A DNA stretch of 13,604 nt, taken from Octopus sinensis. Lineage: Eukaryota. Location: positions 1 through 13,604 of the forward strand of contig NW_021826106.1 of NCBI RefSeq assembly GCF_006345805.1, given 5' to 3'. Shown piece by piece: positions 187-13,604 of the stretch. A model generated the notes under the pieces. The model saw only the letters and a program-made list of their open reading frames with translations. It was not told the DNA's origin and searched no databases. Position 1 is the first letter of the stretch. Every line of letters begins with the position of its first letter. Made by a program: the position numbers and the translations under genes.

Positions 187-1242
187 TATGTATAACTATG
201 GATTATTGAATTTATTCCCTTTATTCCTCGATATCTTTCGAAAGGACTTTCGTTAGAAAATGAATGGAAAAATATGTTATAACTGTACACAGCATTTTCT
301 CTCACAGTCGGATAAATGAACACGCGAATAAATGGACACTTTCAAAATTTTCATTTTTGAGCAAATTACCATACAAAATACATGTTAATTTTTCTAAGTC
401 TCACTTTAAACACATTTTTAATAATTTTGGTACCTGTTGAAAAAGCAGGATCTCGAAAAAAAAAACATCCCACTGACATCAACAATTTTTATTGATATCG
501 AGAAGTCTATTGATTTTTGGTTAACCATTAAAAAATAATGATTTAAAATTGTAAATAAATCGGTTAAAATTGAGATAATAATTAAAATTAACATTAGAAA
601 ATAGAAAAAAATTCTAGATTCCAAATAAAAGCTTCGTCTGCTCCTAACCCTAACTCAAATCTTAAACAACTAACCCTATGCGGGCTTCCAATTCTTAAAA
701 AAATTTAGATGAAAAATTTTAAACAAAATCGTTAGTCAATTTTTGTAATTCTTGATATATGTACGTTAGTTTTTTCACCATTCTCATCTTCGATCAAGTA
801 CATGTCATTTTGTTGATCTACCACAACATATTTGTTGTTTGATAATCCATCGTATAATGGGAACCTTCGAATATTGGCATCATTGTCTTGTCTTGGAAAT
901 GTATTAAAAAATTAATACTACTGTAGCTCCTATACTTTATGGATCCATCTTCTCCTGTCTATCATTTTATCTCCAGCGATAAGAAGTTTTGAATACGCTT
1001 CTTCACGTGCATCTACGATTGCACTGTCGACATCTTCCGATAATAATTGTTCAATTTCCGACTCCGTTATTGGATTCGGATTTTGAGCACCCATAAACAA
1101 GTAGAACGGGACTTTTCCGGTTGTGGAATGTATTGTGTTATTGTAACCATAAACAATGTCTTTGATTATGGTACAATATCGCCCAAAATATCTACGAGAG
1201 GCACTTGCTGATGATATCCAACGTTTTATGCTTTGGTTGAAC

Positions 1243-1269
1243 CTTAAAAAATTAAAACCATCAGGCAAC
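1243..1269 (-). other. 27-nt GT-AG mini-intron (phase 2) in integrase copy 1
   Basis: gtagagag|GTTGCCTGATGGTTTTAATTTTTTAAG|gttcaac; removal turns VERLPDGFNFLRFNQ into the canonical VERFNQ; same position as the intron at 9437-9462. Confidence 0.85.
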
Positions 1270-1506
1270 CTCTCTACTTTCCCTTGTATCCTGGGCGCTC
1301 GTGCTTTACCACGCACATGCTTGATCGAATATTTTTCACAGACTTCGTCAATTAACGAATTACAGAATTCTTTCCCATTGTCTGTTTGGAGGATGATTGG
1401 TGGTCCGATGTAATAAAAATATTTTGGAATAGGTTAGCTATTTCTACCGCAGATTTGATAATTCGACAACTACATATTTCGAGAAGGAATCAACGATTAC
1501 AAGAAT

Positions 1507-1535
1507 CTTTATATTAAATATCTCATCTAAAATAC
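1507..1535 (-). other. 29-nt GT-AG mini-intron in integrase copy 1
   Basis: tcttgg|GTATTTTAGATGAGATATTTAATATAAAG|attctt; removal restores FSW-ILVIVDSF and removes an in-frame stop. Confidence 0.8.
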
Positions 1536-1643
1536 CCAAGAGAATTTATCGTTAATTTCAGAATATCTGCGAAGATCAATGAGATCTGCTATATATCTAT
1601 CTCTAGCCCTACGACTACCAAAATGATTATAATTATGTTCCGC

Positions 1644-1669
1644 CTAAGTAATGTTAATTAATCCAATAC
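1644..1669 (-). other. 26-nt GT-AG mini-intron in integrase copy 1
   Basis: attgag|GTATTGGATTAATTAACATTACTTAG|gcggaa; removal joins a ~55-codon open exon in frame to AEHNYNHFG (His pair of the Zn-binding domain) and removes an in-frame TAA. Confidence 0.8.
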
Positions 1670-2000
1670 CTCAATGCATTTAAGCTTCAACTCAATGTCA
1701 TCCTCTGCGAAAAATCCCAATTTGGTTGAATTCTTAATAAAGAATACATTTCCATTTTCAAAGCATATGTTTTTCGCAAGCTGCTTTAGCCTAAATCGTT
1801 GTTTTCTGTTGGGACTGTCGTCTAATGTGTTTCTTCTTGGTTTTCTCTGATTTTTTTGATTTTGTCAAGAATTTCTTTGCTGAGCTTTATAAATTAAAAA
1901 GTAGAATATTTCTCTAAAATATTTAACTAATTGTTAATATTGATGTATAGACACGATTGAAACAAAACAAATGTTAACAAATAATTACTTAAAAGACCCT

Positions 2001-2930
2001 TCAGCCTTCGGAGTCCACTTTACGAGGTCCACTATCTTCCCGATCTATCATCCCAGGGCCCACACTTCCGTCAATTTTAACTCGTTTCGAACCATTCAGA
2101 AAAGGAACATGGTAGGCATCCTCGACGAGTCGACGCACCGCGATCTCTCGGTCACCGATCCCGTTAGCTTCCTCGTATTTTTAGAGTACCTCCTCAACCC
2201 GGGGTTCATAATCCATTTGCGAAAGACCTCTCCGAAAGTCCAGCACAGTGCTCTCCATCGTACGCTTAAGCACAATTGATTGCATATAAGCAATCAGATG
2301 TTCCCTCACTCTGATCGACTCCAAATATTTTTTAAAATATTTAGACACAATGCCATCCCATGTAAGGACAACAGGAATTAAATTCACTTTGGCCTTGTGG
2401 ATCAGGGATAATTCATTAGCGAGCAATTCATATTTTCTTAACTTTTCAAGTATTACTCGCTGTAAATTATCTTGAGAAGTAACTCCCACATCCACAATCC
2501 AAATTACGTTCTCTTTTTTATCATATACCAATAAATCAGGTTTGTTATAACGAACGGTAGAATCAGTCTCGATTCGAGTGTCCACCCGTACCTCAACTCT
2601 TTCATTCGATATAACCTCCTGCACCGAATGTGTCTTCAACCTTTTCTGATTCTTCAATCCATAAAGACGACAAAAATGGAGATGCAAACAGCGTACAACT
2701 TCATTATGACGTCTCGTGTAGTCAAGATACAGCATACGTTCACATCTAGTGGCCAGATGATCCACTGTTTTCTTCGCCGCTTTACAATGAGGGCACCTTG
2801 AGACCAGTTCTTCGCTGAAAAAGAACATATTCCGATCTTGAAGAAAACATGCCAATCCTTCATTGCGCGGTGAGTTATTTCCATTTCCAAGTCATATAGA
2901 TGAGGACTTGTATGTAGCCATATAGAACAA
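2001..2930 (-). mobile_element. 3' part of a non-LTR retrotransposon with restriction-like endonuclease (R4/Dong-like), 5'-truncated
   Basis: ORF 2181-2855: LQDRNMF, CCHC knuckle CPHC-x8-H-x4-C, RHN, KPDLLVYD...IVDVGV (PD-D core), EKLRKYELLA. The same frame extends upstream through one TGA (2892-2894, SSI*LGNGN) and downstream past TAA 2181-2183 for 59 more codons to TGA 2001-2003. Confidence 0.88.
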
Positions 2931-2938
2931 TTCCCGTA

Positions 2939-3216
2939 GGATCTTTTTCGTCGGAATCCCCACTGCTCCGCTGCAAGTGTACCTGATTCCACTACGAAGT
3001 TCGAAAGCCTTGTGAAGACAATCCGTTCCATAATTTTAGAGACGGAGCATATTAGGCTTATTGACCGATAGTTCTCTGCATGGTCCTTCATTTTTCCAGG
3101 CTTTGGAATCATACGTCATACTATTTCCAAGAGTCCGGTACGTACCCAAGTCTCCAGTTTGCATTGTATAGTGCGGTCAAATATCGTATGAGAATAATTG
3201 AAGCATGTTTGATAAC
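2939..3216 (-). mobile_element. Internal RT fragment of an APE-type LINE (Jockey/I-like)
   Basis: IRYLTALYNA.WRLGYVPDSWK*...MIPKPGK...NYRSISLICSVSKIMERIVFTRL...EQWGFRRKRS matches the N-terminal RT blocks of Jockey/I-type LINEs; one stop and one frameshift. Confidence 0.8.
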
Positions 3217-3351
3217 TCAAGTTAGCTCGCAGACTTTTCTGTACCTCACATATAAATTCTGGATTAGAGATAAACTTCATAAAGTCTGGGATCAATGTTG
3301 ATTCTTTATACACAAAAATCGATTTTTTGATAGGGATGAAAAATATCGATA

Positions 3352-3410
3352 CAGTGAACCCTTGCAAATTGGCCATTTTTGGTAAATAAAAATTTTAGAG
3401 CCAATTCGAA
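3352..3410. mobile_element. Orphan pogo-type terminus
   Basis: TA(3350-3351)|CAGTGAACCCTTGCAAATTGGCC with an internal inverted pair AATTGGC...GCCAATT, the same architecture as the terminus at 5050; no partner TIR found. Confidence 0.5.
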
Positions 3411-3743
3411 AAAAAATCAATAATCAAAAAATAAAATAAACACGTTTAATTTAAATAGCTTATCTGGCAACATTGTCCTCGTACAACTGCTAAAAGATAA
3501 TCAAGTAACCTCGTGAATCAGAATGAGAATTGATGTTTTTAGTATAGAAGCACACTATCTATCTGATTTTTTTTCAAAGTTTATTATAATGAGGAGACAA
3601 TGACAATAATTTGAAACAGTGTAATTTGAATGCAAATAACTAAAATTATAATTTTATTTTTTTTAAAATTTCAAGATTTTATTTAATTCCTAAAATACGT
3701 ATTATATGACGTTGTAGTTTGTCATTACTTTTTGTGGTTGATG

Positions 3744-4400
3744 TATTTTATATTTTTCTGTGATGAATTGTTTTACTTGTTATTTATGGTTTTTTTTCAT
3801 TATTTCTATGTTTATTGGTTCCTTGATCCTTTAATTTTATAATTAATTATTGGTTTGAAGAATCATGTATTTTAATCATTCTATAAACTATTAATAATGA
3901 CTGAAACATTTTATTGGTTTCTCCCATTTTTATATTTTCTATATCTAAAAAATATTTATTTTATATTTTTCTGTGATGAATAGTTTTTACTTGTTATTTA
4001 TGGTTTTTTTCATTATTTCTATGTTTATTGGTTCCTTGATCCTTTAATTTTATATTAATTATGGTTTGAAGAATCATGTATTTTAATCATTCTATAAACA
4101 TTATTAATAATGACTGAAGCATTTTAATGATTTCTCACATTTTTATACATTTTCTATATCTAAAAAATATTTATTTTATATTTTTCTGCGATGAATAGTT
4201 TTTACTTGTTATTTATGGTTTTTTTCATTATTTCTATGTTTATTGGTTCCTTGATCCTTTAATTTCTATAATTAATTATTGGTTTGAAGAATCATGTATT
4301 TTTAATCATTCTATAAACATTATTAATAATGACTGAAGCATTTTAATTGATTTCTCCCATTTTTATACATTTTCTATATCTAAAAAATATTTATTTTATA
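3744..4400. repeat. Tandem repeat, 3 units of ~213-220 bp, very AT-rich
   Basis: Anchor TATTTTTCTG recurs at 3751, 3964 and 4179; units share GGTTCCTTGATCC, GGTTTGAAGAATCATG and CTATATCTAAAAAATATTT. Confidence 0.95.
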
Positions 4401-4436
4401 AAATATTCTCATATAATTGCTTTTTTAAGCATATTA

Positions 4437-5047
4437 CAGTACGACCCCGCCCCAATAGAAAAGTGCCCCAAATATAGAGGGTGCCCCTAGGATAGAGGTA
4501 TATATAATTTTTACATTTTAAAAGCAAATATCTGTATTTTTTAATAATAAAATATGTTTTTTCGTATTAAAAAAGAGGAATTAATTTATTCTGTGAAAAA
4601 TAATCAGTTATTTTGAATTCAGTATTATATTTATTTCTTAGAATCTTCGACATTTTATCTTGAATTCATAGTATTCTTTGAGTCCTTCAGGGCAAGTGTT
4701 GAATAAGGAAGTTTCAAGATCATTGATTATTCTCATTGAATCTTTTAAGTCGGACCCTTCAATTTCATCATTTCCATTATTACAAATATCATTATCCTCA
4801 ATTCCGTTTATTTCAGATCCATTAAAGCTAAAACATGCTTATCAATTAATTCAGATTCTTTTTTTGAATTAGTTTCAGGAAACATGTTCTCTGTTCGTTT
4901 ATTTTCATCCAACAATTGACAATTGTTGTTGTTGTTACTCGACTTCATGCTTCTCCCACATATGCGATTATTTTGTCACATGGGCCACGCGATACCTATG
5001 GGCAGTTAATTTCTTTTATTAATGAAACCACAAGAGTAAAATTTTGG
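4437..5047 (-). mobile_element. 3' portion of a Tigger/pogo element (Tigger C), cut off by the element at 5050
   Basis: Terminus TA|CAGTACGACCCC at 4437; minus strand gives IAYVGEA*SRVTTTTIVNCW, an acidic tract, LKEYYEF and KITDYF (4597-4614), stop at 4567-4569; parallels the C-terminus of the 11536-12980 transposase. Confidence 0.7.
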
Positions 5048-5162
5048 TACAGTAAAACCTCTCGAATCCGCCAAATTTGGGACTGGGAAATTACGGCGGA
5101 TTCGAGAGACAAATTTGAATATTTTTATAGACTAATTAAAAAATGAAGACATTATTTCTGTA

Positions 5163-6930
5163 AATATAGTCAGTTATTTTATTTTAAAATATTTATTGGA
5201 TGTTCTCTACTAACATCATCAAGGTGATTGAAGACATTTAAATTAGTTTCATCCTTTTGTTTGAAGTACTTACTTCTCAATGTATGGAGAGCATTCAAAG
5301 CATCGTGGTCTAAACGACTTATTCATTCTTTTTTTCTCCACAATCAATGTCCTCATCATCATTTTCAGCCAAATTGTCCAGGATCTCTTCATTCTCTGTA
5401 TACTCGTATAGCGTCTTGAATGTCTTAATGACTCCTTGGTCCATCGGCTGTAATAAACACGTAGCATTTGCCGGCAGAAAACATTATTTCAATTTGCTGT
5501 AAATTTGTAAAATCTTGTGAGATGGACATGGTCAATTACGAGTATGATTGCGTTTTTCTTCAGCCAACCTGATATCCCATTCGAACAAAAATGTATTGAA
5601 TAACTTAGAATTTTTGTAAATAGTCCATGTTACCAATGTTCCTCCCTGGTATTTGAATGTACGTACAAGACGGGAATTTTTATGGCCAAATTCGTCACCG
5701 ACTGTCGACTAATGGGAGGACTATACATGTCCGTTGATAAGGGGCAGTACTCGAGGGAATACTCGTTATCAAAAAACTTTTTTCGCATTTGAGGGCAAAA
5801 CTTTCTTGGCTATTAAGTGGCCATTCAAGCCTATTCATGCACCACTAAAACCCAAAAAAATTGTTTTTTGAAGAAATTAATATATTATTAATATCTTTTT
5901 GCTTTTCAATTTGATAAATCGTCGTAAAAAAAATCTGTCTTTCCCACAGATTGGCATCTTAAAAGAAATTTATAATTTTCTATTAAAATTTTTTTTTAAC
6001 ATATTTTTTTTAAAAACAACATTATCATATTTGAATCTGTTATTTAGTATTTAATTAGCAGCAGAGGATAAGATGGAATGGCAATTCCCACGCAAGATGG
6101 CTATTGATATGCGTTGGAAAAGCCATGTCCGTTCCCATGATCATCTTCTTCTGCTTGCAAAATCCCCAGTTTAATAAGGAAAACCTTAGAATCCATCCAT
6201 GCGTTTTTGTGAATTATGATAGGTCACAAAACTTCGATAGCTAAAATTTTAAAGCATCTAGGATTTTTGAATTTTCCAATTATGAATGGTGTTAGTTTAT
6301 CGGTACCAGTCATATTTGAACAGAACATTATCGATATTCGATCCTTCGATAATTTATGCCCATATCTCTTGATCTTGCAAATGATTTACATGGAAGAGCT
6401 TTATAAAATAATCCTGTCTCATCTGCATATAGATATTTTCTCGACCATATAATTTATTTTTGCTCTTATCTTAATAGAGAAAATCATTAACTTCAGAATT
6501 TGAGAAATTCTCTGTAGAGATTCTCCATAAAGTTTCTTCAATTTAACCCATGTCTTCTTTAAATTTTTTAAGCCATCCACGACTGGCTTTAAACTCATTT
6601 ATTAGACGTTTCTTCTTCGCAAAGTCTTCAGCCTTTGTAAGAATAATCGAATCATTAAGAATTGCTCCTCTGGTTCCATCATTTGAATCCAGACATATTA
6701 CTCATCAATTTAATGAACTTTAAATATGGATTCCGAGATAATTCTGAAAAAAGCAAGGCAGATACATTCTTCTGCTCCTAAGGTCGTTTAAGGGATCGTC
6801 TTGGAATAACGCGTCTGAATCTTTCGGAAAATAGCGGACACTCTTGTAAGCGAATCCCTGGATTTTGATCGATAAATTTAATAATTTGTTCATCTTCGGA
6901 ATTTTTCAATCTGGTACAATTACGTTTCAT
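5163..6930 (-). pseudogene. Tigger transposase (CENP-B-type HTH + DDE_1), frameshifted and interrupted at 5604-6184
   Basis: MKRNCTRLK start at 6930; FKASRGWLKKFK; ADETGLFYKALP; IIGKFKNPRCFK; AWMDSK|LFNTFLFEWD; ID(H)CPSH; LPANATCLLQPMDQGVIKTFK; NKITDY at 5166-5183. Confidence 0.88.
5604..6184 (-). other. 581-nt insertion with 8-bp direct repeat and GT-AG boundaries inside the Tigger A transposase
   Basis: CTTAGAAT at 5604-5611 and 6185-6192; on the minus strand gattctaag|GTTTTCC...AAAAATTCTAAG|ttattc; removal gives W-M-D-S-K-L-F in frame. Confidence 0.75.
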
Positions 6931-7873
6931 TACAATTAAACATGACCAAACCACACAATAAGATGCTAATGTCTCGTGTAAAAGTGTTTTTGAATTTAAA
7001 AAATAATAATTAAGAAAATAACAAATATATATTTCTAAAATGCGGCGGATTCGAGAAATTGGCGGATTCGGGAATTTCTCATAGGAAATTTCGTATTCTT
7101 TAAAAAAATTCGGCGGATTCGAGAGGTGGGCGGATTCGAGAAATTTTACACGACAAAATCAATTTTGTATCTAAGGATGTGGAAATTCCGGCATTTTTCC
7201 TATGGCTCAACGAACTTGTTTTTTGAAGACAAAATCGTCTTTTAGTGGCAGGTTTACAGAAAAGGATCCTTGTAGACAATTTCTTTGCCCTTCCTTACAA
7301 TTGACGAGGTGAAATAATACAGATTGATTACATTAAATGTTATTTATTTTATTTTTTAAATGTTTTTATTTATCGAATTAACTACAATAAATTATTACGC
7401 ACGTTATATTATTTTCTTTGTTGTGCATGTATGCAGTTAATTCTTATTTTATTTTTCGTGCTTTTATGTTTTAATTTTATAATTTTTTTTTTTTTTATTT
7501 GTTTGACTATTAATTAAATTGATTATGGTAAATATCTGCATAAAGTATATTTTGCAAGTGAATGTGTATTCATTTTATCAATTAATTAATATGCAATTCG
7601 ATACTATTGGTTTAAAAAAAAATTAATATGCATTCATACAGACTTGTTTAAATTTATTTCTTCTAGTATTTTATGTCACCGGCTCATTAATGGACCCGGC
7701 ATATTAATGGACCGCATAAATGTCATTAATATCAATTACGTCCATATGAAAAGTATCTTACTTTTTTCTAAGTCCAATTTTAAACCTATTTTTGATGGTT
7801 TAATGACTTCTGGAAAACTAAGATCGACACATAACAACCAAACCTAACCTCATTTTGAAAATTATTGATTAAT

Positions 7874-8536
7874 GAAGAAGAAGGATGTCATTTATTAGAG
7901 AGGCCAAAGATTCGGATGCCAGCGGCCGGGCAACCTTAGGGATTTTTTCCGAGCAACAAAGCGGCTGCGGCGGGAGCGAGGAAATTGCGAGGAGAGGACA
8001 TCTTCTGCGGAAAATTCGTCCGGCAAATAGCGTTCCGCGGGGGTTTCCGAGAGGGGATTTTTGGATTTCTGCGAGGCTGAGGTAGGCAAGAGGGACATAG
8101 CCAGCATTTTAGTGCCATAGCCTCGCGTTTTACGGATATTTAGGCAATACAGGTGGAAATACTCATCGCAAGAGGAGCAGCGAAGGCGTTCTTTCTGGGG
8201 GCTGAAGACAGGCATGCCTGCAAGTGTAGGTTCACGAAGGAAACAACTGGGTGGTTGTGAAGCTTTGGGTGTCATGGATATAAGAAAAAAAACAGAATGA
8301 GTGAAATGAAATGAAAAAAGAGTAAGAGAGGATAGGAAAGATAGAAATGGGGCTAAGAGTGAAAGTAAGAGGTAATAAAGAGATGGAAAGATGAGAAAAG
8401 TGAACAAAGATACAAAAGGATGTAACATAGAAAAAAAGGACTACAGAATTACAATGAAAAAGACACCACCACAACGATGAGTATGAGTACAAAATTCCCC
8501 ACTGTTTATATCCACTGTTTAATATCCTCAGAAGGC
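7874..8536 (-). mobile_element. 5' fragment of a PHD-finger-bearing non-LTR retrotransposon (CRE-like, tentative)
   Basis: GC-rich; pyrimidine-rich leader then ATG at 8275; across frameshifts it reads LRCSSCDEYFHLYCLNIRKTR...KCWLCPSCL (PHD Cys4-His-Cys3 pattern) and KIPKVARPLASESLASLINDIL; flanked by ATTGATTAAT at 7864-7873 and 8537-8546. Confidence 0.5.
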
Positions 8537-9436
8537 ATTGATTAATTATTATATTGTTTATTATATTAGAGGGTCTCCATTTTAAAATAATCAATTTTTC
8601 ATTTAAAATAGTAATAGTACACTTTTAAAATTTGAGATATGAATATTCTAACGTAAAAAGTCAATTTCGAAAGACAATCTTACTCAAACCCTAATTGTTG
8701 CAAGTCATTTGATACTGTTCCCTATGCGGCCTGCGGCCGCAGTGTATTTGACTCGGATTTTATGATTAATACGATCTTTATACTTTCTGATTACACTTTC
8801 TAGTGTTACGCGAACTCTAAATAACAGTTTTATTAAAACTTAATTAAAAACCCCGTATACGACACAATGCAAAACATTAAAAGTTTCAACTATTATTTTA
8901 AAATTTTAGAAAGTCTCGAGATATTAACATTTTTGATTACATTTTTTCCATATCTTCTAGATCATAATTATGAAATTCTGATTAATCACTGTATACATAT
9001 TTGTTTGTAGTTCATCATACAAAGGATACTTCTGTTTGAAACATTTCATCATAATCATGTCTAATAATCACTTTATCTCCCACGTTTATATTTTCCTCAT
9101 CATATCGCCATTTCTTTTTTTCTTCATTTTCTCGCCTGCTTTTTGAAGATTTTCCAGAATCTTCATATTCTGCTGGTCATCTTCCGAGCATTCATTTTTT
9201 TCGTAATTTATTTCTTCTTCTGGATCAGTTCCATCGAATGCCATTAATGCATTTATTTCATTTTCGTCTGGTCTTTTTTTAATTCCCATAAAACTTCGAA
9301 AAGGAATATTCTTGGTCGTGTCATGTTTTGTTCGATTGTAATCATATACGATCCTCTTTATAATGTTGAAGTAAACTCCAAACTTCCAGCTGAAGCACTT
9401 GTTGAGGATATCCACCGTTTAATTGATTGGTTGAAC

Positions 9437-9462
9437 CTTTTTATTATAGCTTTAAAATAAAC
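9437..9462 (-). other. 26-nt GT-AG mini-intron (phase 2) in integrase copy 2
   Basis: gttgaaag|GTTTATTTTAAAGCTATAATAAAAAG|gttcaac; restores VERFNQ; position identical to 1243-1269. Confidence 0.88.
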
Positions 9463-9711
9463 CTTTCAACTTGTCCTTGTACCCAAGGTGCTCTAGGTCT
9501 CCACAGATATGTTTATTTTACAAAATTCACACAGCTTATCCATTTCAGAATTGCGAAACTCCCTTCCGTTATCAGTTTGGAGAATGACGGGTTCTCCAAT
9601 AACGTAAAAAATATTCTCAAGTAGAGATGAAATTTCCAATGCACTTTTATTCTTTGCTAATTTTACAACAGCATACTTAGTAAACGAATCAATGACCACT
9701 AGTAAACGAAC

Positions 9712-9739
9712 CTTCATATAAATAATTATTTAAGTTTCC
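9712..9739 (-). other. Probable degenerate mini-intron (~28 nt, GG instead of GT donor)
   Basis: AT-rich, frame-breaking interruption ending in AG between SW and (VR)LLVVID, the site of the 1507-1535 intron in copy 1; exact boundaries uncertain. Confidence 0.45.
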
Positions 9740-9865
9740 CCACGAGTTTGATCGATTTATTTCTAAATATCTTCTGAGATCTATAAGATCTGCGATATAA
9801 CGGTCTCTAGGACCTCTGGCAATGATTGGAGTGATAGGTGGCTTGGTTGCCATCAATTTTTTGGA

Positions 9866-9891
9866 CTAGCTAATAAATAAATAGCCAATAC
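9866..9891 (-). other. 26-nt GT-AG mini-intron in integrase copy 2
   Basis: tgtcaa|GTATTGGCTATTTTATTATTAGCTAG|tccaaa; removal puts CVYCQ in frame with SKKLMATKPPITPII. Confidence 0.8.
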
Positions 9892-9951
9892 TTGACAGTA
9901 AACACATTTGTCTAAAACAAAGCGGATATCTTCTCTCATTATGTTATAGAA

Positions 9952-10582
9952 CAGGGCTGGCCAACCCAAGGCCCGCGGCCCGCGAGAGAAATTTTGTATG
10001 AAGTTAACCTATAAATACATTCAAGATAAATTTTTCTTAAGTTTAATAAATAAAGATAAATTTATAAGTTTAATAAATTTTAAAGTTTATCTATTTTTGT
10101 AGCTGTTATCATATGAGAAAAAAGGAAAATTTTGAAGAAAAAGGCAATTCAGCACAATCATTGGGAGAAGATTACTTTTTTATAATGCATAATTCTAAGC
10201 CAACATGTTTATTTGCAAGGAGAAAGTATCGGTGGTGAAAGAGTACAATGTAAGAAGACATTATGAAACAAAGCATTCCGAATACGCGAAATTTAGTAAG
10301 GAATTGAAACAAGGAACTGGATTCGCTTAAATCTGAATTGAGAAATCAGCAAAGACTATTAAATTCATCGATACACTCTTCTTCTGATACTGTTAAAGCA
10401 AGCTACTCTGTTGCAATGATAATTTCAAGAGAATGAAATCATTTTCGGATGGAGAATTCGTAAAAGAGTGTTTGGATGCTGTCGTGAAAGACATTTTGCC
10501 AGATAAAACTAAAAAAGTTTTCAAACATTAGCTTGTCACGTCAAACCATATGTCGCAGGGTAATGACATTTCAAATGAAATT
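9952..10582 (+). mobile_element. 5' fragment of a Buster/SPIN-like hAT transposon (GTF2IRD2-like transposase N-terminus)
   Basis: Terminus CAGGGCTGGCCAAC at 9952 preceded by TTATAGAA (nnnTAnnn target); GGCCCGCG subterminal repeats; from ~10113 decayed coding EDYFF..KPTCL.CKEKVSVVKEYNVRRHYETKH (zf-BED-like), KASY, FSDGEFVKECL, SLSRQTICRRV; no right TIR. Confidence 0.85.
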
Positions 10583-11222
10583 CCACTTTTCCCAGCAAAT
10601 TCATTTTCCCCAGTCCTCTTATTTCCCTTTAATGGAGTTCAATAATTACACTTTTGTAAATGATAAAATTTTTAATAATTAATTAAGATAGTTGTCAATC
10701 TACTGAATCTACAAGAGTTAGAAATTTTGTTGCTTAATTCTTGTAACTTCAAGAAATTTGATGTAAAGAATTAGTAGATGCACATTCCATCTGTCCATCA
10801 CAGTTGCAACAAATTATAAAACCACAAAGGAGTCTTCTCAGGCACTCAACGGAGTAGGCATGGTCAAAATTTCCTTTTTCAAATCCACTCATCGACTAGA
10901 TCAAACTAGTAAGTTGGTAAAAAAATTACAATCCCTAGAAAATATTGTGTTAAAGTGTCAAAACAGCTGAAGAGATTTTGGTGTATACGACAAACAAACT
11001 CAATACGTATAACCTCCATTTGGGGCAGACCTCTGGCTTGGGGAACCTCTATTTTGGGGGGAAACCTCTATTTTTGGGGTAGTTTGAAAGGATATAATTT
11101 TTATGCGGTAATTTCCAAATTTAGAAATTACCGGAACCTCTAAGTGGGGCACGATTTTTAATTTATATACATATTTGCTATTAAAATTAAAATTAATTAT
11201 ATAAAATTTCATTTGGAAGCCT

Positions 11223-11497
11223 GCCCCAGCTAACATAGCAATGGAGGGCTACTTCCTGAAAGAGGGATCGAGCTTCCGTGGACGTCCACGTGTTACGCTG
11301 CCGGAAACACTTGACGGAGACCTGAAATGTGTGAAGAAAAGGCTAAGGAGTGGTGAGGATCTGGACGAGCTGAGGAAACTCGCTCACGACAGAGGAGGTT
11401 GGAGGAGGTGGTTCAAGGATTTTGTTTTTAATGCTGCACGAGTAAAATTATAAACTAAATGATTCTACGTATGTTGCAAATAATAATAATAATAATA
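11223..11497 (+). mobile_element. 5'-truncated RTE-like LINE 3' end with (AAT)7 tail and 12-bp TSD
   Basis: TSD ATTTGGAAGCCT at 11211-11222 and 11498-11509; encodes PANIAMEGYF...RGRPRVTLPETLDGDLK...LRKLAHDRGGWR (RTE-type RT C-terminus); (AAT)7 at 11479-11499. Confidence 0.88.
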
Positions 11498-11535
11498 ATT
11501 TGGAAGCCTCGTGTAATTTTTGTATTCTTGTTGTT

Positions 11536-12980
11536 ATGGCTCGTAAGCTTAGTCTTGAGTTAAAGATCAAAATTGCCAAGGAATTAGTGAAAATAAACAT
11601 CTTACTGAACGAGATATTGTAGATAAGTACAAAATTAGTAAAGGTTTTTTATTAATGTAAGTTTTTAGGCGCTGTGTCACGTATTAAAAAAAAATTATCT
11701 CAATTTTTTAATACTGGGGCTGTTCAAACAGATTTTCCCAGAAATATTCAACGCTCTCCTCATACTTTATCCCAAAAATTGGATATAAATTGTTTTTGAG
11801 GCTTTCACCAAGACAAGGGAAGAATTTATTCCTGTGTCCGGTCCTCTTTTAAAAAATATTGCTTCCAAAGTAGCAAGGATGTTGAATTATTCGGCGTTCA
11901 AAGGGTCCAATGGCTGGTTGGAAAAAATTTAAGAAAAGACATATGTTGTCATTTAAGACAATTAGTGGAGAGAAAAACTCTTCCGATGTTTCTTCGCTTG
12001 ATATGTTTTTTCCAAGTATGATGAATACGTAAAAGAATATGGTCTTCAAAATATTTTTAATTGCGACGAAACTGGGTTATATATTAAAAGGATACCTTCA
12101 AAATCATTTGTAAGTTCGGATGGATGAAGATTGTTTCGGAATTAAAAGGAGTAAAGAAAAATTCCACTATTCTTTTGTCGGTCAGTGCTTGTGGCGAAAA
12201 ATTGAAGCCATTGTTAGTAGGAAAATATAAATCCCCACGTTGTATGAAAAACTTTAACCTGAAGAACATGGAGTTTCATATTCATCATCTAAAAACAGTT
12301 GGATGACATCAGAAATATTTATTACATGGCTCACCATTACAATGAACAAATGATTACGCAAAAGAGAAAAATTGTTTTGTTACTTGATAACGCAAGCTGT
12401 CACAAATATATCCATCTTTCCAACATTGAATTGTTTTTTCTCCCAAAAAATACAACCTCATTAATTCAACCGTTAGACATGGGTATTATTAAATCTTTCA
12501 AGTCCAATTATCTTAACGCTTCATTGGATTTTACTCTTTATTTGAGGACGTTGAGTTACAAATTGTTAATTTAAAAAAAATAAATCTTCGTCATGTCATA
12601 ATAATGTTGGAAAAACATGGCAAAATTTAAATCCTGAAACAATAACGAATTGTTGGGAAACAATTAATAACTATCGGCAACAGATTCCTAGTTCAAATTT
12701 TTTAGTTAACAGTGAGAAAGAAAATTTGGACACGATAATTGCAGACGTAATTGCTGAAAATGAAGAAGAAAATAATGATGAGTCAATATATGACCAAACT
12801 GAATGCAACTGTTCACACTTGGACACGATAACAGCAATGAATAACCTTGAAGAGAATATTCACCGTTTGTTTCACGATGCGTTAAAAGACTATTACAATT
12901 TCAGAAAAATATTGGGCATACATATGAAGAAATCTGCAACAGGAAACAAAATAACAGATTATTTTCGTGTAATAGAATAA
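11536..12980 (+). pseudogene. Tigger transposase (HTH + DDE_1, DD29D), frameshifted, one mini-intron
   Basis: MARKLSLELKIKI; KYKISKG|AVSRIKK; FKGSNGWLEKFKKRH; NCDETGLY; GKYKSPRC; SWMTSEIF; LLLDNASCH-(29 aa)-QPLDMGIIKSFK; KITDYF then stop at 12978-12980. Confidence 0.92.
11644..11668 (+). other. 25-nt GT-AG mini-intron (phase 1) in the Tigger B HTH
   Basis: agtaaag|GTTTTTTATTAATGTAAGTTTTTAG|gcgctg; removal yields ISKGAVSRIKK and removes an in-frame stop. Confidence 0.8.
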
Positions 12981-13604
12981 AAAATTTTTTTCTACTTGAA
13001 AAATACTCTAATTATCAATAAAATTAGTGGAAAACATGTTTAAATGTTCTTAAAAATACTTTATTTATTTATAAATTAATGAAAAATATGCTAAAACTAT
13101 TAAAATTATTATAAAAATAAAGAAATTTCAGACCTCCATTTTTGGGGAAACCTCTATTTTTGGGGCAATTTTTCAAAATTGATGCCCCAAATGGAGGTTA
13201 TACTGTACCACTGAGAGCAGTGTGTAAATTCATTTATATTTAATAATTACGAGTTAACACTTAAAACAAACCGGACGTGACGCCGTTTTAATAAAAAAAA
13301 CGTACGTAAATTGTTATTCCGAAGTGTGAAACTCCATTTTTAATAAAAAAGACATAGATTTCTACGCGAGAATGTTTGAGCAGTAGCATCCTAAATAATG
13401 GATTTCCTTCAATTTTATTTTCCTGCTTAATTTAATATTTTTTAATTTTTACTTTAAAATAAACACTAATCAACTTCTTGTTCATTACTGCTAGATCCTC
13501 AAATTTCGATCGAGTAGATCCTCATTTTTGCACACACAGTCTGCAATACTTTAACATCACTTAATTTGATTTTTCAAATTGCGATTTGAAGTTCGTAATT
13601 GCCA

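Follow-up and report, generated by a model that had tools for sequence, protein, structure and literature searches.

Dead copies of a small, probably Ginger2/Tdd-type DNA transposon with putative mini-introns in octopus-labelled DNA of very probable dicyemid origin

The stretch analysed here, 13,604 nucleotides (nt) of contig NW_021826106.1 in the Octopus sinensis assembly GCF_006345805.1 (hereafter the 13.6 kb window), is eukaryotic DNA with 32% G+C and consists nearly entirely of nested transposon remains. Among these are two integrase genes on the minus strand (732–1884 and 8893–9951), each part of a longer element remnant, copy A and copy B, with ~74% identity between them in aligned DNA and 50% in protein. 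The original prediction, made from the sequence alone, held that two DD35E integrase genes carry introns of 26–29 nt; both loci were confirmed, and both genes are decayed, with frameshifts in each and stops in copy A, so that they are pseudogenes rather than genes. With good confidence, copies A and B belong to two different subfamilies of one small (~2 kb) Ginger2/Tdd-type cut-and-paste DNA transposon, and both are dead. Their features are listed below, with intron positions numbered 1 to 5 and identified by the peptides on either side; L001 is a related octopus-labelled contig.

300–1900, minus strand: copy A, a Ginger-type element remnant that keeps its 3' terminus, 3' untranslated region and integrase pseudogene
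300–339, plus strand: copy A 3' terminal inverted repeat (TCTCACAGTCGGATAAATGAACACGCGAATAAATGGACAC); no other site of the window aligns locally as well to the L001 repeat, TGTCACAGTCCGAATAAAATACACGCCGAATAAT
732–1884, minus strand: integrase/transposase pseudogene of copy A, with a DD35E core, two frameshifts near 1420–1455 and several stops
1644–1669, minus strand: intron position 1 (KCIE|AEH), 26 nt, GT..AG, phase 0; same site in L001 at 9513–9537
1507–1535, minus strand: intron position 3 (FSW|ILV), 29 nt, GT..AG, phase 0; site common to copy B and L001
1243–1269, minus strand: intron position 4 (VER|FNQ), 27 nt, GT..AG, phase 2, one codon past the catalytic E
892–917, minus strand: remnant of intron position 5 (VLLR|QDNDAN), 26 nt, donor now TA, seen by comparison with L001
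7674–9951, minus strand: copy B, a second Ginger-type remnant, about 50% divergent, with 3' terminus, 3' region and integrase pseudogene
7674–7735, plus strand: copy B 3' terminal inverted repeat, which reads TGTCACCGG and continues with two CATTAATGGACC subrepeats, a design that recurs at related loci
8893–9951, minus strand: integrase pseudogene of copy B, with the C-x2-C half of a zinc finger, a DD35E core and at least 4 frameshifts
9866–9891, minus strand: intron position 2 (C..CQ|SKK), 26 nt, GT..AG, phase 0; L001 counterpart at 9658–9687 (30 nt)
9712–9739, minus strand: intron position 3 in copy B, 28 nt, degenerate (GG..AG), which works only with a GG donor
9437–9462, minus strand: intron position 4 in copy B (VER|FNQ), 26 nt, GT..AG, phase 2

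Both genes were translated on the minus strand, once with the six proposed inserts left in and once with them removed, and all GT..AG segments of 15–80 nt whose removal joins the flanking peptides free of stops were listed exhaustively. Each junction had one solution only, with coordinates identical to those originally proposed, which upholds the claim of five clean GT-AG introns and one degenerate intron whose removal restores the reading frame. The junctions are pinned by alignment to intronless relatives, and the chance of finding GT and AG at given fixed positions is, by our estimate, ~0.3% per junction. The A+T content is 79% in the inserts and 65% in the gene, and the inserts have diverged further than the exons beside them. 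Across copies A, B and L001, GT..AG ends and a length of 25–30 nt were found in 10 of the 12 intron instances, the other two having degenerate ends and lying in pseudogenes. As had been predicted, the VER|FNQ intron occupies the same position in both copies with a different sequence in each, and the same is true of the W|[IV]L intron at position 3, which had not been pointed out before as common to copies A and B. The expectation of at least four intron positions was likewise borne out, the first introns of copy A and copy B being at different positions and L001 possessing all four, and a fifth (VLLR|QDNDAN) is present as an intact 26-nt GT..AG insert in L001, as a remnant in copy A and not at all in copy B. 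Because the inserts have GT..AG ends and occupy four positions conserved among copies with only 50–65% protein identity, even though their sequences differ, they are read as spliceosomal introns, and the sequence comparison supports that they behave as such. Internal eliminated sequences of the ciliate (Paramecium) type were considered and rejected, as the ends are GT..AG and not TA..TA, the neighbours are animal-type transposons and the standard genetic code fits.

A search with the integrase recovered P0002 (57% identity), a protein under the label Octopus sinensis, which at VER|FNQ contains nine extra residues that correspond to a decayed 27-nt intron of L001, the contig of P0002, read through in frame. 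L001 harbors a nearly full-length integrase gene with inserts at positions 1–4 (KC[IV]E|AEH, 25 nt; C..CQ|SKK, 30 nt; FSW|IL, 25 nt; and VER|(F)NQ, with decayed ends) in addition to the fifth position. The counterpart of copy A on another octopus-labelled contig, L004, carries an intron identical to that at position 4 of copy A. Relatives lacking the inserts were also found: two marine metagenome contigs (L002 and L003; 48–51% identity to copy A) read uninterrupted through positions 2–4 and are genomic DNA, not cDNA, and a paralogous element on L004, copy D (35% identity), has zero introns. Relatives without the insertions had been named beforehand as a result that would speak against an old intron-bearing lineage; such relatives do exist (L004 copy D, P0001 and P0003), and what they show is limited to the introns being lineage-specific. 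The intronless relatives fix the expected spliced product and restrict the introns to part of the family, and they are not an argument against the intron nature of the inserts. Since position 5 occurs in the subfamily of copy A and L001 and is absent from copy B, and none of the positions is interrupted in copy D or the metagenome relatives, the comparison suggests that the introns arose after the lineage entered a host with mini-introns. A scan of metagenomes for closer or intron-bearing relatives yielded 80 loci, the best matches having 45% identity or less. Of the family members seen, copy D (16488–18563), with one frameshift, is the best preserved, and it may have been active recently. Three further octopus-labelled contigs that bear a long interspersed nuclear element (LINE) have flanks with only transposon genes and no host gene, among them extra integrase fragments and termini.

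Complete units are visible in two relatives. The L001 element spans 9165–10928 and has AATTA at both sides, a 5-bp target duplication; its inverted repeats (9133–9198 and 10895–10960) are 66 nt at 79% identity, the inner 34 nt (TGTGACAGTCCGAATAAAATACACGCCGAATAAT) having one mismatch, and its gene starts ~160 nt inside the 34-nt repeat. The element of L004 copy D spans 16488–18563 with TTATA on both sides and is bounded by repeats (16480–16539 and 18512–18571) of 60 nt at 83% identity that start with TGTGACCGG. In the relatives, the gene is a stand-alone gene with its own start about 160–215 nt inside the inverted repeat, and no gene other than that of the integrase lies between the repeats of either unit (1.8 kb and 2.1 kb), reverse transcriptase and RNase H both being absent. 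All four ends of L001 and L004 copy D read TGTGA or TGTCA, TGTCA is found at window position 7674, and the terminus at 300 reads TCTCA, one substitution off the TGTNR pattern. The combination of TGTSACCGG with tandem subrepeats ending in GGACC or GAGCC occurs at eight sites, including 7674, in about 140 kb, for which about 0.5 chance matches would be expected by our estimate. The protein is about 400–430 residues long without extra domains and has D, D and E core residues with the 35-residue spacing; an H-x3-H ... C-x2-C (H2C2) finger is present in L001 and L004 copy D, and only the C-x2-C half in copy B. Inspection of the aligned sequences by eye revealed neither a YPYY nor a GPY/F motif; their C-terminal region reads YPLYDGL. 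A further contig, L087, contains an internal-deletion derivative of the element, a kind of product characteristic of such transposons.

In the window, each copy retains the 3' side of such a unit. The 5' end of copy A is cut off by the LINE directly upstream, and a deletion at about 1617 has removed ~41 codons, including the H2C2 finger and intron position 2. Its terminus has the second base mutated from TGTCAC and two ATAAATG-ACAC subrepeats inside. The integrase of copy B is truncated at 9951 by a hAT element (9955–10560, plus strand) that starts at 9955 with a CAGGGCTGGCCAAC terminus. Copies A and B have homologous termini, with 60% identity over about 150 nt compared with 36% beyond, and a comparison of their 3' regions past the first 160 nt gave noise only, a shared 10-mer (CCCTATGCGG) being near chance expectation. 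The terminus at 7674 and the copy B gene would form one element, with 1.2 kb between them. Local alignment against the window, L001, L004 and L005 (a further octopus-labelled contig) found no match for a 5' partner repeat of either window terminus. Within the 3' region of copy B lies a GC-rich (about 45%) fragment (7885–8430, minus strand) with a 177-codon frame and a PHD-like cysteine motif (CSSCDEYFHLYC), which resembles the first reading frame of a retroelement and has 70% identity to contig L086 at 11563–11775; it is probably an unrelated retroelement piece inserted there. The start of the hAT element encodes the N-terminal zinc finger and DUF4371-like region of a FAM200/ZBED5-type transposase.

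The anatomy of the two relatives (inverted repeats and 5-bp duplications present, a lone integrase gene, reverse transcriptase and RNase H absent) agrees with the initial classification as a Ginger-type DNA transposon rather than long terminal repeat (LTR) debris. The contrary reading would make the copies fragments of a Gypsy-type LTR pol gene or a Polinton/Maverick integrase, with the inserts being random sequence in dead DNA. It draws on the nearest solved structures being retroviral and Ty3 integrases (Protein Data Bank matches of the copy A integrase, E about 3e-9) and on more distant database relatives that include integrase-plus-chromodomain proteins, and there is indeed a common fold family, a common H2C2 and DD35E order and a common TG...CA end logic with the Gypsy/Ty3 integrases. 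However, neither L001, L004 copy D nor copy A has a reverse transcriptase or RNase H upstream, gag and protease are absent too, the terminal repeats are inverted rather than direct, and the GT..AG inserts, a difference from Gypsy/Ty3, lie at identical codon positions in independent copies. The reverse transcriptase adjoining copy A belongs to the non-LTR LINE, which is 94% identical to separate copies elsewhere. Polintons are 15–20 kb, have a protein-primed polymerase and capsid genes and a 6-bp duplication, and their integrases lack the H2C2 finger (PMC2836005) that is present in these 2 kb elements with 5-bp duplications; a scan of a viral contig collection yielded no relative. An origin from LTR elements or Polintons is thus largely refuted and highly improbable.

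Within the Ginger-related groups, the features match Ginger2/Tdd and do not match Ginger1, GingerRoot, Polinton or Gypsy as these have been described (PMC2836005, PMC6839031). Ginger2/Tdd elements are characterized by TGTNR ends, AT-rich targets, an H2C2 finger with a DDE core, no YPYY or GPY/F and, in TDD-4/5, a 5-bp duplication (PMC2836005). The family described here is alike in its inverted repeats, TGTNR...CA ends, AT-rich target and single H2C2 and DDE transposase, without YPYY or GPY/F by eye, and shares the 5-bp target duplication with TDD-4/5. It differs in size (1.8–2.1 kb compared with 2.7–6.7 kb), in its repeats (34–66 nt compared with 45–297) and in having up to five introns of 25–30 nt. 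Ginger1 and the domesticated GIN1/GIN2, together with Imagin, resemble it in the Gypsy-integrase-like transposase, TGTNR ends, inverted repeats and possession of introns, but Ginger1 has 4-bp CCGG/CCGT duplications, YPYY and GPY/F motifs and Ulp1/OTU/PHD domains, none of which were seen here. As Ginger1 genes interrupted by 1–4 canonical GT-AG introns were described in 2010 (PMC2836005), the family is less cryptic or novel than had been suggested. GingerRoot also has an integrase-related DDE transposase between inverted repeats, but with a 6-bp GC-rich duplication, TA...TA ends and repeats of 100–150 bp.

Stand-alone genes with host-type introns at conserved positions could also be expected of a decayed host gene family that descends from a domesticated integrase, like GIN1 or KRBA2, the introns then being those of an ordinary host gene, and domesticated genes derived from Ginger are known (PMC2836005, PMC3575427, PMC12863088). 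Such an origin is very unlikely, as inverted repeats and 5-bp target duplications bound the relatives, many copies and fragments, including the deletion derivative, are spread in transposon-rich DNA, all copies are pseudogenes, and for none is there a conserved genomic context.

As a Ginger2/Tdd-type transposon, the element would comprise inverted TGT(G/C)AC termini with short tandem subrepeats, the latter being putative transposase binding sites, around one gene for a protein of 400–430 residues with a short N-terminal region, the H2C2 zinc finger, the DD35E core and a small C-terminal domain. The transposase would cut at the TG...CA ends and insert with a 5-bp stagger, duplicating a 5-bp AT-rich target, and its production would require the host spliceosome to remove up to five introns of 25–30 nt. 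Because the element would move as DNA, its introns would be inherited with it.

The original prediction had placed the element in a host with very short introns, and a non-transposon gene on a sister contig supports this. L005 (1.03 Mb) contains an apparently intact gene for a CPVL carboxypeptidase in 1.5 kb with seven introns of 19–27 nt, six with GT..AG and one, of 25 nt, with GC..AG ends (by eye), whose removal matches intronless homologs (e.g., IDNP|VGTGFSF and LCDPYN|MVDYG); beside it is a casein kinase 1 (CK1) gene without introns in its visible 250 codons. The CPVL paralog on L001 is a pseudogene with one donor changed from GT to TT and further frame breaks, and has one intron position in common with the L005 gene. 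A comparison of 51 animal genomes detected introns <30 nt in none but those of myxobolid myxozoans and Dicyema japonicum (PMC13644364), a dicyemid that inhabits the renal sac of O. sinensis and has a genome of 67.5 Mb with 49% repeats (PMC6736024). The ultra-short introns of dicyemids and myxobolids resemble those described here in length (19–30 nt), minimal GTa...AG signal and A-rich 3' parts; they differ in that the reports concern host genes and do not mention transposon genes with such introns. Given the seven introns of 19–27 nt in the L005 CPVL gene, the window and its sister contigs would very probably be dicyemid rather than octopus DNA, the octopus assembly holding contigs of its parasite. 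The octopus-labelled contigs L001, L004, L005 and L086–L088 are probably dicyemid DNA as well.

The alternative is that the window is a real octopus chromosome into which the mini-intron transposons and the CPVL gene came by horizontal transfer from a dicyemid, and where the transposon copies, their introns being unspliceable, decayed. The O. sinensis reference assembly is indeed the source of all named relatives, whose contigs range from 64 kb to 1.03 Mb, every integrase copy seen is dead, and the contact between host and parasite is intimate and lifelong (PMC6736024). However, divergent subfamilies (50–65% protein identity) with common intron positions need to have diversified where such introns are spliced, the L005 CPVL gene is open after seven mini-intron removals and adjoins the compact CK1 gene, and about 130 kb of these contigs showed not one gene with long introns of the octopus type. 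The gene identifiers of the octopus matches (9 of 9) are at the end of the numbering range (115228140–115231605), which would fit unplaced scaffolds. Horizontal transfer is therefore improbable; if it were true, the mini-introns, presumably unremovable by the octopus spliceosome, would be a built-in donor marker for parasite-to-host transfer between animals.

CpG depletion did not help to tell octopus from parasite DNA, the ratio of observed to expected CpG being 0.87–1.07 everywhere. Window positions 1011–7089 and L004 positions 6069–11751 are ~95% identical and colinear over 6 kb, L004 being a 455 kb contig, and this repetition could represent a segmental duplication, a divergent haplotype or a second dicyemid species. 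The repeated mosaic consists of integrase copy A, the LINE, a 213-bp satellite and two pogo elements, and the L004 version departs from that of the window by a hAT insertion and by a deletion of 194 nt.

Several points weigh against a Ginger2/Tdd-type transposon with spliced introns in a dicyemid. The assignment to Ginger2 is supported by the anatomy, on which it rests, and the duplications reported for metazoan Ginger2 elements are 4 bp (or 6 bp) long, whereas the duplication here reads as 5 bp and AT-rich, in two elements only, and a 4-bp reading does not match. In the window there is one 3' terminus per copy (300 and 7674) with no readable target duplication, and an insertion of 0.5–1 kb has to be assumed if the copy B gene and the terminus at 7674 are to be connected. 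Among the copies examined none is intact, so that transposase activity is predicted only, as is the removal of the inserts by splicing. Finally, every named relative carries the Octopus sinensis label, which makes the host identity indirect, and a literature search found no report of such parasite contamination in the octopus assembly.

A Ginger transposase with introns had been described before, and dicyemids are known to have introns of this size as a rule; the novelty lies in a Ginger2/Tdd-like family of very small size in this host, with up to five mini-introns, and in parasite contigs that are likely mislabelled as octopus. The family would add to a host lineage whose transposons are essentially undescribed even though they make up half its genome. 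The introns of the transposon gene took on the extreme intron size of the host, and related families vary in having them, making the family usable as a marker of DNA-based transposition and of intron gain and loss inside a transposon. If the host call is true, O. sinensis reference contigs of up to 1 Mb and octopus-named NCBI proteins belong to the parasite. Gene finders that bar introns <30 nt will mis-annotate such DNA. The contigs concerned include VCDQ01011016.1, VCDQ01012107.1 and VCDQ01002408.1 and others of GCA_006345805.1 (L001, L004, L005 and L086–L088), up to 1.03 Mb in length. Of the NCBI proteins named octopus, LOC115228165 is translated in frame across an intron, and exons are missing from the CPVL models.

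Several other elements lie in the window. The LINE upstream of copy A (about 1900–3400, minus strand) is a 5'-truncated non-LTR retrotransposon with a reverse transcriptase, a C-terminal zinc-knuckle and a nuclease-like domain; it has 94% identity to an O. sinensis-labelled protein and copies on other contigs, and its next-best named relatives, at 50–60% identity, are from microsporidia (Hamiltosporidium and Astathelohania) and Lepidoptera, an odd host spread. A tandem repeat (3744–4400) has three copies of a very AT-rich 213-bp unit with 95% matches. Further along is a pogo/Tigger-type element (5043–7158, minus strand) with GGCGGATTCGAGAG-type inverted repeats, the motif occurring several times at the right end, and its L004 counterpart has a 379-codon open frame. 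A second, decayed pogo/Tigger-type element (11007–13203, plus strand) is bounded by perfect 21-nt inverted repeats (11007–11027 and 13183–13203). Because its DNA-binding region contains a candidate 25-nt GT..AG intron (11641–11665; KYKISK|GAVSRIKK), this second DNA-transposon family of the window may carry a mini-intron too.

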